Shown: positions 51,152-59,708, counted from the first letter of the stretch. The stretch: 64,000 nt of DNA from Blastocladiella emersonii ATCC 22665 (GCA_025594325.1 JANHCV010000001.1:1798001-1862000); one strand, 5' to 3'. The notes: a model not told the origin generated them from the letters alone. Made by a program: numbers and translations.

Positions 51152-51979
51152 AACTGGTCGGTCGGCTCGGCGTGTGAGCGGGGCTCGAATTCGCATGTTT
51201 CCCTGGTGGTACTCGACGGACCTTTGCGGCCGACCGAGGTTGCACCAAGTGTCAATCGTCGATAGAGCTCCATGGTAGTGTTTGATGTTGAGGGAGGGGA
51301 GAGGTGAAGCGCGGGGACGTCTGAGGACATGTTCGCGGCTGAGGCGTCCCGAATCGCCAGATCGCGATCCCATCCTGATCATCACAGTCACGAGAACCGA
51401 GAAGGTCAAACTCATGAATCAAGCTGTATAGGCACAAGCTTTCCGTGGACACGATTCAGAGAAGTCCATAGCGGAGACGGCGCCGGTCTCGGCGCCGTTC
51501 ACGACCGTGCTGGCGCCGACAAAGCCGTTGCCGTCCTGCACCTGGCCCCGCTCAAGCTTGCCGTTGCGATCGATCAAACACGTCGGCCGCGACCGAGTCG
51601 TCGCCTTTCGCGCTGAGTTGAGTCTCGTAGTACCGTCGCCGTTGACCCCGCAGGCGGCCATGGCCGGGTACTCGTCGGCATCAGAGCTCGTCGTCGCATC
51701 CTACAGCGCGTCGCCGTTGGCGTCGCCCCCCAAGCTGAACTGACCCGTCGGTCGACGTGTACATGGCCGCGCTGGCGGCATCCATCACCGATCTGGCCAT
51801 CGACGATGCCCAGACCGCCGCATGTGATCAACCGTCACGCCATGATCCGCGAGATGATGTCCCATTTGATAGCGATGTGTGTCGAGTTGAAGAAGATGCA
51901 ACAATAAGAACTTGCAAGCAAGCAAAGTCGACATTTGCAACTTGCGCACGCTCTTCGAGCTCCACGCACAAGACTAGCC

Positions 51980-56207: not shown

Positions 56208-57416
56208 TTAGCAGCACATGTCGCCGTGGTCCATGCCGCCGAGCTCGGCGCCCGTCGCGTGGATGCCGTCGAGGGCGAGGCCCGTGAGGTCAAAGCCAGC
56301 CGGGAGGTCGGCCGAGCCATCGCCGTTCACATCCGTGTTGGCGTCGACGAGACCGTCGCCGTCCTGGTCGAGGTTCTGCGTGAGGTTGCCGTTGCGGTCG
56401 TAGACGCCGACCGTGACCGAGCCGTCGTCGTTGGCGTGCAGCTGCGTCTCGTAGTAGCCGTCGCCGTCCGCGTCGTAGGCCGCCATGGTCAGGTTGCCGT
56501 CGGCGTCGAACCGCGCAGCCGCGTCCTGCGACCCGTCGCCGGTCACGTCGCCCTCGAGCTGCACCGACCCGTCGGCCGACGTGTACGCGATCACGTTGGC
56601 GGTGCCGTCGCCGTCCGTGTCGACCGAGCGGATCTCGGCGCCGCCCTGGAACCGCTCGATGTGCACCTCGTTGCCGTCAATGATCTCGACCGCCACGGCC
56701 GAGCCAATGTCGCCGACCTCGGCCGACGCGTCGCGGGCCGCGTCCTCGGCAGGCGCGAAGGCCGGCTCGTACAGCAGCTCGGTGCGGTTGGCCGCCACGT
56801 TGGCGAACTGCGTGTCGCTGCCGTCGGCCTGGTCGATGAGGTTGGCGGCCTCGGCCCAGGTGATGCCCGGGTTGTTGGCGAGCACCTCGGCAATGGCGTT
56901 GGTGAAGAGCGAGCCGTTGGCGGTGGCGCCCGACAGCTCGGTCGACGAGCACGACGACAGGACCACGAGGTTGCCGGCAATGTCGGCGTCGCTGAAGTCG
57001 AGGTCGACGATCGTGCCCGACTGGCACGAGTCGTACACCATGGTCATGTTGGCGCCCTCGGGCAGGTCGGCCATGATCGCGCGGATCTCGTCGTCGGTGA
57101 TGGGCCCGTCGGCGGCGTAGATGGCCTCGTCCTGGCCGTCGGCCTCGTCGCCGTTCCTGTCGGCGACCTGGCCGCCGTGGCCCGAGAACGAGAACATGAG
57201 CGTGTCTCCGGGCTCGGCCTGGGCCACCATGTCGCGGAGGCTCTGCAGGATGTCCTCGCGGGTGACGGGCGCATCGGTGTCGGTGACGGTCTGGACGTTG
57301 TCGATGCCCATGCCGCACGCCACGTTGGTCATGGTGTTGGCGTCGATGTCGCAGCCCGACAGCGGGTTGTCGGTGCCGGCGTAGTTGAGGCCAAAGCAAA
57401 CTGCGGCGTTAACCAT
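56208..57416 (-). CDS. Metacaspase (peptidase C14B) fused to a C-terminal Dx[DN]xDG repeat region
   Basis: FGLNY...LSGCDIDA, catalytic His in FSFSGHGGQ..D.NGDE.DG.DEAI, catalytic Cys in YDSCQSGTIVDL, p10 VVLSSC...GSLFTNA. Then DTDGDG, DVTGDG, DADGN, DADGDG, DRNGN, DQDGDG and DVNGDG. Intronless, 402 aa from ATG at 57416. Confidence 0.9.
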   Translation of the reverse strand: MVNAAVCFGLNYAGTDNPLSGCDIDANTMTNVACGMGIDNVQTVTDTDAPVTREDILQSLRDMVAQAEPGDTLMFSFSGHGGQVADRNGDEADGQDEAIYAADGPITDDEIRAIMADLPEGANMTMVYDSCQSGTIVDLDFSDADIAGNLVVLSSCSSTELSGATANGSLFTNAIAEVLANNPGITWAEAANLIDQADGSDTQFANVAANRTELLYEPAFAPAEDAARDASAEVGDIGSAVAVEIIDGNEVHIERFQGGAEIRSVDTDGDGTANVIAYTSADGSVQLEGDVTGDGSQDAAARFDADGNLTMAAYDADGDGYYETQLHANDDGSVTVGVYDRNGNLTQNLDQDGDGLVDANTDVNGDGSADLPAGFDLTGLALDGIHATGAELGGMDHGDMCC

Positions 57417-57497: not shown

Positions 57498-57505
57498 CTT
57501 TATAG
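57498..57505 (-). promoter_or_regulatory. TATA-like box upstream of the metacaspase gene
   Basis: Minus-strand CTATAAAG about 85 nt upstream of the ATG, embedded in GC-rich DNA. Confidence 0.4.
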
Positions 57506-58121: not shown

Positions 58122-59708
58122 ATGCGATTCACGGCGGCCGAGTGCGCGCTCTTCTTCACGTCCGACGAGGACTGTCCGTCGCACTCGCACGACGCACAGG
58201 TTGGTCTCACCGCGCCCTCCCCATCGCGACTTCCGAGCGGGCACTGACCAGCCTGACGTGAGCGTAGGCCGAGGTCGAGGAGCTCATCTACGGCGAGTAC
58301 CTGGCGGCGCTGCGCAAGGCGCGGTCCGCGACCGCCTCGCGTGTCGCTTCACCGACCGACGAGTCCGACGGGGCCGGCACCCGCCGCTCCGATGCGACCG
58401 ACGCCGAAGACGGCTCCGACCCGCTCCTCCTGCGCCGCGCGCGGCACCAGCGGTACGTGCAGCGCAACGCGGACGCGCTGCCGGCGTACATGTCGGCGCT
58501 GAGCGCGTCGCGCCCGTGGCTCGTGTACTGGCTGCTGCACGCGCTGGACCTGCTGTCGGCGGACCACGGCCTGCCCGAGGCGCTGCGGCTGCGCGCCGCG
58601 ACCACGGTGCTGCGGTTCCAGCAGCGCGCGACGGGCGGGTTCGGCGGCGGGCTCGGCCAGATCGCGCACCTCGCGCCGACGTACGCCGCGGTCCACGCGC
58701 TCGCGATCACGCGTGAGCCCGACGCGTGGAAGGCGATCGATCGGCGCGCCATGTACCGGTTCTTCATGAGGATGAAGCAGAACGACGGGTCGTTTCGCGT
58801 CTCGGACGGCGGCGAGGTTGATCTGCGGTGCGTCCCGCAGTCATAGCGAGGTATGGGCCGAGAACTGACGCGTGCGTGTGCCTGCAGCGGCATGTACTGT
58901 GCGCTGACGGTCGCGCGGATTCTCGGGATCATGACGCCCGAGCTCACGGCCAACTGCATCGACTTCATCGTCAAGTACGCGTCGATCGCTGCTCTATCAG
59001 CCGGCTCGCACTGATCCCTCGTCGTCCTCCTGTTCAGGTGCCAGGCATACGACGGCGGCCTCGCCGCATCACCCGGCCTCGAGGCGCACGGCGGGTACAC
59101 GTTCTGCGGCCTAGCCACGGCGATCCTGCTGGGCGAGGCGGACAAGCTCAACCTCCCCGCGCTCCTCGGGTGGGCGGTGCGGCGACAGATGCCGCTCGAG
59201 GGCGGGTTCCAGGGTCGGCCGAACAAGCTCGTGGACGGGTGCTACTCGTGGTGGGTGGGTGGGATCTTTGCGATGCTGGACGTGGCCATGCCCGCGGCTT
59301 CCCCCACCTCCGCCCGGCCGAGCGACGCGTGGGACCGCGAGGCGCTGCAAGAGTACATTCTGGTCGCGGCGCAGAACGAGCTCGGCGGGCTCATCGACAA
59401 GCCGGGCAAGTCGCCCGACCAGTACCACACGTGCTACGTGCTCAGCGGGCTGTCGGCGGCGCAGCACCAGTTCGACGCGCGCAGCGGCGAGTACGGGCTC
59501 GAGTTTGTCACGCGCGAGGAGCTGCATATCACCGGGCCCGTGGGGAACCTGCTGGTACGTCTTGTTGCTCGCTGCGGACGCAGGACAGCGCTGACGACGA
59601 GACGTGTAGCACCCGACCGACCCGATCCACAACGTCCGGCCCGCCGCGCTGCACGCCATGCTGCGGTACTTTGCCGAGCGGCCCATCGACCCGACCTCGC
59701 TCGAATAG
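58122..59708 (+). CDS. RAM1: Protein farnesyltransferase beta subunit
   Basis: ASRPWLVYWLLHAL, GGFGGG.GQ.AHLAPTYAAV, GGEVDLR, EAHGGYTFCGLA, EGGFQGRPNKLVDGCYSWW, LIDKPGK..D.YHTCY.LSGLS and HNV. About four introns. Confidence 0.95.

Follow-up and report, generated by a model that had tools for sequence, protein, structure and literature searches.

The locus and its reading frame

The gene considered here lies in a stretch of 64,000 nt from Blastocladiella emersonii ATCC 22665 (the window; all coordinates without a locus name are positions within it, and names of the types P0001 and L001 denote proteins and loci of this analysis). It encodes a compact metacaspase without a prodomain, followed by a C-terminal tail with a series of calcium-type loops (Table 1). 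An earlier note on this DNA had reported an intronless gene at this position, and the observation holds: the open reading frame (ORF) of 402 codons contains no internal stop and is read from the DNA as a single exon.

The deposited gene model, P0001, is shorter. It has 374 amino acids, begins at Met29 of the reading frame used here and loses core beta-strand 1. The 402-residue reading from the ATG at 57416 is supported by eight of the nine close paralogues (paralogue alignment A1) and by more distant relatives, which begin three to five residues ahead of this strand. The paralogue P0008 (378 amino acids) looks shortened at its 5' end in the same way as the deposited model. The G+C content at third codon positions (GC3) is 95.5%, similar to that of the other long ORFs in the window. 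The encoded protein is very acidic (isoelectric point about 4), with ten arginines and no lysine. Lysine makes up on average 2.25% of the residues in the long ORFs of the window, so that its complete absence from 402 residues has a P of about 1e-4; a low lysine count is found across the family, with zero to three per protein.

Table 1. Positions of the metacaspase gene, its parts and related sequence within the window
Feature	Position	Strand	Basis and remarks
Whole coding sequence (CDS)	56208..57416	minus	402 amino acids, one exon read from DNA; ATG 57416, TAA 56208-56210
TATAAA box	57499..57504	minus	83 nt 5' of the ATG; read from the sequence, putative function
p20 part of Peptidase_C14, residues 1-145	56982..57416	minus	Pfam match, 7qp0 alignment, invariant columns in alignments A1 and A3
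His80	57177-57179	minus	dyad histidine, SGHG motif
Cys131	57024-57026	minus	dyad cysteine, DSCQSG motif
Compact p10-like part, residues 146-221	56754..56981	minus	alignment A3, AlphaFold2 (AF2) model, GSU0716 and CgMCA-I as matching folds
Disordered acidic linker, residues 222-239	56700..56753	minus	predicted local distance difference test (pLDDT) score below 50
Beta-hairpin repeat module, residues 240-372	56301..56699	minus	tail-only AF2 model, motif statistics, DUF6802 relation
Five nine-residue calcium-type loops, residues 266, 290, 315, 350 and 362	56595-56621, 56523-56549, 56448-56474, 56343-56369, 56307-56333	minus
C-terminal helix (about residues 377-388) and Cys-Cys (residues 401-402)	56211..56300	minus	models, paralogues; putative lipidation
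191-bp tract, CDS nt 306-496	56921..57111	minus	98.4% identity with the gene of P0003, which lies on a different contig
Decayed tail copy, 286 bp	51493..51778	minus	72.5% nucleotide identity to 56321-56602; stop and frame shift

The protease half

The first 221 residues have the features of a metacaspase (C14B), namely a caspase-hemoglobinase fold with the His/Cys dyad in p20, and a p10 that follows it. Residues 5–182 match Pfam Peptidase_C14 (PF00656) with an E-value of 4e-23 (82.6 bits against a cutoff of 21.4), and only a sub-threshold match was found in NCBIfam, to caspase_w_EACC1 (36.6 bits against 140). In an alignment with PDB sequences (7qp0), the p20 region matched Yca1 and Candida glabrata CgMCA-I with E-values of E-26 to E-28. 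The best folds for the full-length AlphaFold model (pLDDT 78, predicted template modelling score (pTM) 0.56) were those of Geobacter GSU0716, CgMCA-I, TbMCA2, Yca1 and plant metacaspases, with fold E-values of 1e-15 to 1e-12 against the first four of these. The dyad proposed in the earlier note is intact, both the SGHG and the DSCQSG motif being present.

At the level of sequence, the S1 aspartates and the p20 calcium-site residues are all kept. The calcium ligands of CgMCA-I are Gly196, Asp198, Asp214, Thr242 and Asp245 (PMC9622860), and all five positions are retained here, mapping through the 7qp0 alignment to Gly94, Asp96, Asp108, Thr135 and Asp138. Asp25, His80, Asp96, Asp108, Asp129 and Cys131 are invariant among zoosporic, canonical fungal and bacterial sequences (alignment A3). 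Asp25 and Asp129 align with the two aspartates that are reported to line the S1 pocket in the structure of TbMCA2. An acidic S1 pocket confers specificity for arginine and lysine on metacaspases.

The differences from canonical type I enzymes lie at the N-terminus and beyond the catalytic cysteine. In comparison with Pecoramyces and its relatives, about 70 residues are missing between the DLxx motif that follows this cysteine and the first p10 strand. This inter-domain segment of type I enzymes is absent from the whole zoosporic clade described below, and the very short linker between p20 and p10 reported earlier is thereby borne out. Positions 263 and 307 of CgMCA-I, which have been tested as its first maturation cleavage sites (PMC9622860), fall within the segment that is missing here. 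Residues 146–221 correspond in the alignment to p10 of the canonical type I enzymes and are modelled by AF2 with the strands (149–156 and 204–209) and helices (170–181 and 187–198) expected of it. The conserved acidic motif of p10 is degenerate, reading SSCSSTELSGA in place of SGCKDTQTSAD in canonical enzymes. Both aspartates of the p10 280-loop, residues that have been associated with the S3 pocket and with calcium binding of low affinity (PMC9626678, PMC5756287), are thus gone.

The absence of a prodomain, also claimed in the earlier note, is likewise upheld. Beta-strand 1 starts at residue 4, and a stop codon lies seven codons 5' of the ATG. The 5' error in the deposited model does illustrate that annotation is fallible, and one could suppose that a prodomain exon has been missed in what is really an ordinary type I enzyme. 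This is hardly credible in view of the upstream stop, the TATAAA sequence ahead of the ATG, the start of at least 30 independently annotated relatives in three genera three to five residues ahead of strand 1, and the loss of the type I inter-domain segment throughout the clade.

The protein thus fits none of types I, II and III cleanly when prodomain, linker and domain order are compared, as had been proposed. The type I prodomain, a proline-rich repeat or zinc finger, is optional (PMC5756287), and the order of p20 and p10 is that of type I; assignment to this type was rejected because a prodomain and an inter-domain segment are lacking and the 280-loop aspartates are replaced. Type II requires a long linker between p20 and p10, which here is even shorter than that of type I enzymes, and type III requires p10 ahead of p20, the reverse of the order found. 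Orthocaspases consist of p20 only and resemble this protein in the C-terminal accessory domain alone, a p10-like region being present here.

The C-terminal tail

All of the Dx[DN]xDG-like motifs listed in the earlier note are present: DTDGDG (residue 266), DVTGDG (290), DADGN (304), DADGDG (315), DRNGN (340), DQDGDG (350) and DVNGDG (362). Five of these are full nine-residue loops fitting D.[DNT].DG..[DEN], as against a mean of 0.05 and a maximum of three in 20,000 composition-preserving shuffles of the tail. The Dx[DN]xDG linear motif binds calcium in at least 12 structural contexts (PMC3123361). The full-length AF2 model gives ten antiparallel strands for residues 240–372, and after them a helix (377–388) and the end ...DMCC. 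The AF2 model of the tail alone, made with 13 family tails as the alignment (pLDDT 85, pTM 0.78), confidently predicts a single-layer beta-hairpin meander. In this model the nine-residue loops alternate with DG turns, the shorter xDG[NS] motifs forming tight turns between strands, and the five loops are predicted to line one edge of the sheet. Among paralogues with a mean identity of 37%, the loop aspartates and glycines are the most conserved columns of the tail.

Familiar calcium-binding folds were considered for this module. It is not an EF-hand, as the loops are flanked by beta strands rather than helices and the Pfam EF-hand matches are below threshold. An FG-GAP or integrin propeller has only the loop motif in common with the predicted open, single-layer meander; no propeller was found among the PDB matches, and FG-GAP and FG-GAP_3 score weakly, in five to six of the 13 tails. 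A dockerin was rejected because of the fold predicted and the low scores in Pfam. OspA, MORN4, the CPAP G-box and GtfA DUF1975 were rejected as kin of the tail, Z-scores of at most 8.1 reflecting a common arrangement and not kinship. The EF-hand, integrin blade or dockerin named in the earlier note therefore gives way to a predicted single-layer meander with a distant kinship to DUF6802 (PF20615).

Several comparisons point to this kinship. The nearest predicted shapes in the ESM Atlas are bacterial DUF6802/EF-hand clusters, with template modelling scores of 0.54–0.57. Twelve of the 13 family tails match PF20615 at E<=0.1, and the 845-residue paralogue P0022 exceeds the threshold with 31.2 bits. 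A profile built from the family tails scored 95 bits on two DUF6802 proteins, and hhalign gave a probability of 97% to a DUF6802 protein (96.8%) and to a 1254-residue repeat protein from Hyphomicrobiales, at 31–38% identity. On the basis of these results, the tail is read as a distant member of the functionally uncharacterised bacterial repeats of DUF6802 type. Other bacterial relatives of the tail come from Corynebacterium, Microbacteriaceae and others, at 30–38% identity, and an atlas feature search with the tail gave scores of at most 0.86, which serve as leads only. The Hyphomicrobiales protein, encoded in a metagenome-assembled genome (L001, 2500–6264, plus strand), consists almost wholly of the unit seen in the tail, in which a DxDGDGxxD loop and then a DADGN turn are each followed by a strand, and is the best bacterial look-alike.

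A lineage-specific family

The closest relatives of the encoded protein all come from the B. emersonii assembly. An exhaustive search of 1.84 billion representatives gave 14,115 C14 matches, and among the best 150 of these, which were checked for both halves, only B. emersonii proteins matched protease and tail together; the two-domain fusion was found nowhere else in that set. Compact relatives without a prodomain number at least 30 in B. emersonii, six in Catenaria anguillulae and two in Dinochytrium kinnereticum, with one further UniParc entry. The tail-bearing set, all of it from B. emersonii, comprises this gene, P0002–P0009, P0020, P0022, P0023 and, weakly, P0074, amounting to at least 12 genes. 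The dyad histidine and/or cysteine has been lost in eight of the 13 listed tail-bearing members, and in P0074 as well. The compact metacaspases seen in Catenaria and Dinochytrium have no such tail.

Other tails occur on the same core. Three B. emersonii proteins (P0017, P0018 and P0021) carry repetitive tails rich in proline, glycine, tryptophan and tyrosine, without a calcium-loop module, which implies that one protease core has been joined to several unrelated tails. In D. kinnereticum, two compact metacaspases without a prodomain but with acidic, cysteine-tipped tails (P0138 and P0072) lie on one 14-kb contig; as this fungus is a chytrid, the pair indicates that the clade reaches beyond Blastocladiomycota. 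Two dead paralogues, P0002 and P0009, stand in tandem at L011 (2835–8302), flanked by IFT20 (intraflagellar transport) on one side and, on the other, by a DUF1295 gene in which an ICMT signal is faintly seen. Neighbours with flagellar and prenyl-processing roles are a suggestive but unsupported hint.

The literature search found nothing on metacaspases of Blastocladiella or Blastocladiomycota, on a metacaspase–FG-GAP fusion or on DUF6802, and a review of metacaspases states that, this case apart, accessory domains at the C-terminus belong to prokaryotic orthocaspases alone (PMC5756287). The earlier suggestion of an undescribed system stands insofar as no literature on the combination was found. 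The gene is not unique but belongs to a set of at least 12 tail-bearing and at least 30 compact members in this genome, many of them catalytically dead.

The relationship of the protease half to other metacaspases was addressed with an IQ-TREE analysis of 91 sequences, in which Pecoramyces and Ramicandelaber alone were named in the "fungal type I" group. The compact sequences of Blastocladiella, Catenaria and Dinochytrium form a monophyletic clade (SH-like approximate likelihood ratio test (SH-aLRT) 98), which was encountered in zoosporic fungi only. This zoosporic clade falls outside a clade of fungal type I-like and euglenid sequences, but with a backbone support of 22–25 its deep placement is tentative. 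A tree forced to unite the zoosporic clade with fungal type I was better by 0.84 log-likelihood units (p 0.51 in the approximately unbiased (AU) test). Since this constraint carries no penalty, and given the zoosporic clade, the protease is best read, from its sequence relationships, as a derivative of type I metacaspases peculiar to this lineage, or as their sister, and not as a bacterial import.

It is very improbable, for the same reasons, that the whole gene was recently imported from bacteria. Its lack of an intron, the compact junction of p20 and p10, the bacterial GSU0716 as best fold match and the bacterial type of its tail would all suit such an import, but the placement of the C14 domain in the zoosporic clade, the unpenalised union of that clade with fungal type I, a codon use like that of the host and the confinement of matches to both halves, among the best 150, to B. 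emersonii argue otherwise. Two paralogous genes further weaken it: those for P0007 (L012, 3001–4298) and P0005 (L013, 3001–4317) exceed their coding length by about 80 nt, between codons ~67 and ~102, which indicates an intron there that is absent from this gene and from those of P0002, P0003 and P0009. The bacterial origin entertained in the earlier note thus finds no support as regards the protease; the tail alone has a bacterial type.

Mosaic structure and probable gene conversion

The two halves of the gene have different closest relatives. The C14 half is 81% identical to that of P0003 and 58–63% identical to those of P0002 and P0004, while the tail is 59–65% identical to those of P0002 and P0004 and 43% identical to that of P0003. 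This gene pairs with P0003 in the C14 tree (94/97), and its companions in the tail tree are P0002, P0004 and P0009 (100/100). The swapped groupings are rejected by AU tests, that of C14 with p 0.02 and that of the tail with p 8e-7, the groups having been named after the identities had been seen. This copy is a mosaic, the affinities of its protease half lying with one paralogue and those of its tail with others.

Within the protease half, the 191-bp tract listed in Table 1 stands out in its similarity to the P0003 gene, whose DNA identity falls to 80% upstream and 88% downstream of it; over the tract itself, identity to the genes of P0005 and P0007 is 88%. Identical amino acids are encoded by the same codon at 60 of 61 positions in the tract, the figure for the flanks being 88 of 112 (p 1.8e-4, Fisher). 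Given the tract's near identity, the lower identity of its flanks and the sharing of codons, it is best explained by ectopic gene conversion, which we regard as likely. A decayed copy of a type-B metacaspase tail lies 4.5 kb from the intact gene, between a SulP-like gene and an acyl-CoA synthetase ORF (51757, plus strand), and its site may be a rearrangement breakpoint. Birth, death and recombination of genes continue in this family, and the present gene is one of their products.

This history bears on the source of the tail. It is possible, if on the doubtful side, that the tail alone passed from bacteria into an ancestor of Blastocladiella, was fused there to a resident compact metacaspase and then spread by duplication and recombination. 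All relatives found for the tail are bacterial (DUF6802, Hyphomicrobiales, Corynebacterium, Microbacteriaceae and others), the compact metacaspases seen in Catenaria and Dinochytrium are tailless, and domain exchange between paralogues has been shown directly. Against this, the GC3 of the gene is typical of the host, no close bacterial donor was found (identities being below 40%), and short acidic repeats can arise and expand independently. Other eukaryotic carriers are possible too, a word search with the tail alone among size-matched proteins having given no match and being uninformative.

Proposed function

On balance, we favour a reading of this gene as encoding a cytosolic, acidic cysteine protease of the zoosporic compact metacaspase clade that is switched by calcium and carries a calcium-loop tail. 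To judge from the residues retained, the protease half would cut after arginine or lysine and would be switched on by calcium bound at the p20 site. An internal maturation cut is probably not needed, because the protein has neither the prodomain nor the p20–p10 segment of about 70 residues. A flexible linker would connect the protease to the DUF6802-type meander, whose five loops most likely bind calcium; such binding would stiffen the sheet and turn the tail into a module for docking or sensing that depends on calcium. The role in death or differentiation raised in the earlier note is likewise hypothetical.

Further steps are more speculative. The terminal Cys-Cys may be S-acylated and so tether the protein to a membrane, by analogy with Yck2, whose C-terminal Cys-Cys is palmitoylated by Akr1 (PMC2173492, PMC3145546). 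A -CC end is common to eight tail-bearing members of the family, and several other relatives end in clusters of cysteines. Arg228, the sole basic residue of the linker and kept in six of ten aligned paralogues, could be the site at which an active family member frees the protease. Active and dead paralogues may also act as protease and pseudoprotease partners, as might be imagined from the lipidated TbMCA-Id discussed below.

The divergent upstream neighbour (58457–58846, plus strand) encodes a farnesyltransferase beta subunit (E 9e-29 to PDB chains of that subunit). Farnesyltransferase acts on CaaX ends, and a -CC end is not a CaaX substrate. Since the end of this protein would be unusable by that enzyme, the adjacency is read as coincidence and was dropped as a clue to lipidation.

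A number of points count against the favoured reading. Lipidation draws no support from the farnesyltransferase gene, and the close paralogues P0004 and P0009 lack the -CC end. One of the five loops has threonine at its third position. The tail of this gene scores 13.6 bits against PF20615, where the gathering threshold is 27, and repeats and composition bias can inflate profile matches of the tail. The pTM of 0.56 for the full-length model gives no sign of contact between tail and protease. Finally, about half of the paralogues are catalytically dead and keep the tail, so its role would not only be the regulation of catalysis in cis.

The last two points lend themselves to another explanation, that the tail is a structural spacer or interaction scaffold in which calcium is only structural, with no sensing and no effect on catalysis, and that the family acts mainly by non-catalytic binding. 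MORN4, the CPAP G-box and the DUF1975 domain of GtfA/TarM, the most similar solved folds, are interaction surfaces, which would suit such a role, as would the retention of the tail in paralogues without the histidine and/or cysteine and the lack of a predicted contact. We consider this explanation unlikely, though worth keeping in mind: the copy in question retains every catalytic and calcium-site residue, and conservation in the tail peaks at the loop aspartates and glycines rather than in a surface patch.

The favoured reading, of a calcium-switched protease with a calcium-loop tail, can be extended to the family as a whole. Zoosporic fungi, and B. emersonii above all, might possess a private calcium-gated network of active and dead compact metacaspases tethered to membranes through S-acylated Cys-Cys ends, in which a DUF6802-type tail would replace the low-affinity calcium sensing of the lost 280-loop, active members would free or remodel their partners by cuts at the sole linker arginine and gene conversion would keep the members diverse, a counterpart of the trypanosome MCA3/MCA4 flagellar system. 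This wider scheme is a long shot.

Metacaspases have been sorted into three architectures, and those of eukaryotes have been thought free of C-terminal accessory domains, a rule that the present family breaks. A minimal core that keeps the p20 calcium site, having neither prodomain nor maturation loop, lends itself, as a simple case from nature, to testing how a metacaspase is switched on by calcium instead of by proteolytic maturation, and the fusion would offer a first functional context for the uncharacterised bacterial DUF6802 repeat. The family, in which many copies are dead, the residues targeted by the enzyme itself are nearly absent and gene conversion is apparent, is also a compact model of how proteases and pseudoproteases evolve. 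This significance is that of one little-studied lineage, known here from sequence and models.

Comparison with known systems

The MALT1 paracaspase (caspase and Ig3) likewise places a beta-rich C-terminal domain after C14, and it is among the fold matches of the full-length model. It superimposes with a root-mean-square deviation of 16–22 Å and without a common arrangement, however; its C-terminal domain has an Ig fold rather than a meander, and neither p10 nor control by calcium is found in paracaspases.

Trypanosoma brucei TbMCA-Id (MCA4) and its relatives resemble the present family as a multi-copy set with active and pseudopeptidase members in flagellated cells. TbMCA-Id is reported to be a lipidated pseudopeptidase on the flagellar membrane (cited in PMC10896300). 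It belongs to another clade and has no calcium-loop tail, and its lipidation is N-terminal (myristate and palmitate), in contrast to the putative C-terminal lipidation proposed here.

DUF6802 (PF20615) proteins and the tail are built of the same unit, in which a nine-residue DxDGDGxxD loop and then a tight DG turn are each followed by a strand, and their predicted shapes are similar. The tail differs in scoring below the Pfam threshold, in being eukaryotic and fused to a protease, and in ending with a helix and Cys-Cys.

Prokaryotic orthocaspases and bacterial type I-like metacaspases (GSU0716, PDB 3bij) are similar in their compact domain and C-terminal accessory domains. Orthocaspases lack the p10 that is present here, and the host of this gene is fungal; among the best matches there was no bacterial fusion of C14 with DUF6802.

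The type I metacaspases (Yca1 and CgMCA-I; MEROPS C14B) share with this protein the p20 fold, the dyad, the acidic S1 pocket, the five p20 calcium positions and the order of p20 before p10. Unlike them, it has no Pro/Gln-rich prodomain, is shorter by about 70 residues between its two parts, has replaced the 280-loop aspartates, comes from a family in which lysine is nearly absent, and has gained a C-terminal module of 180 residues.

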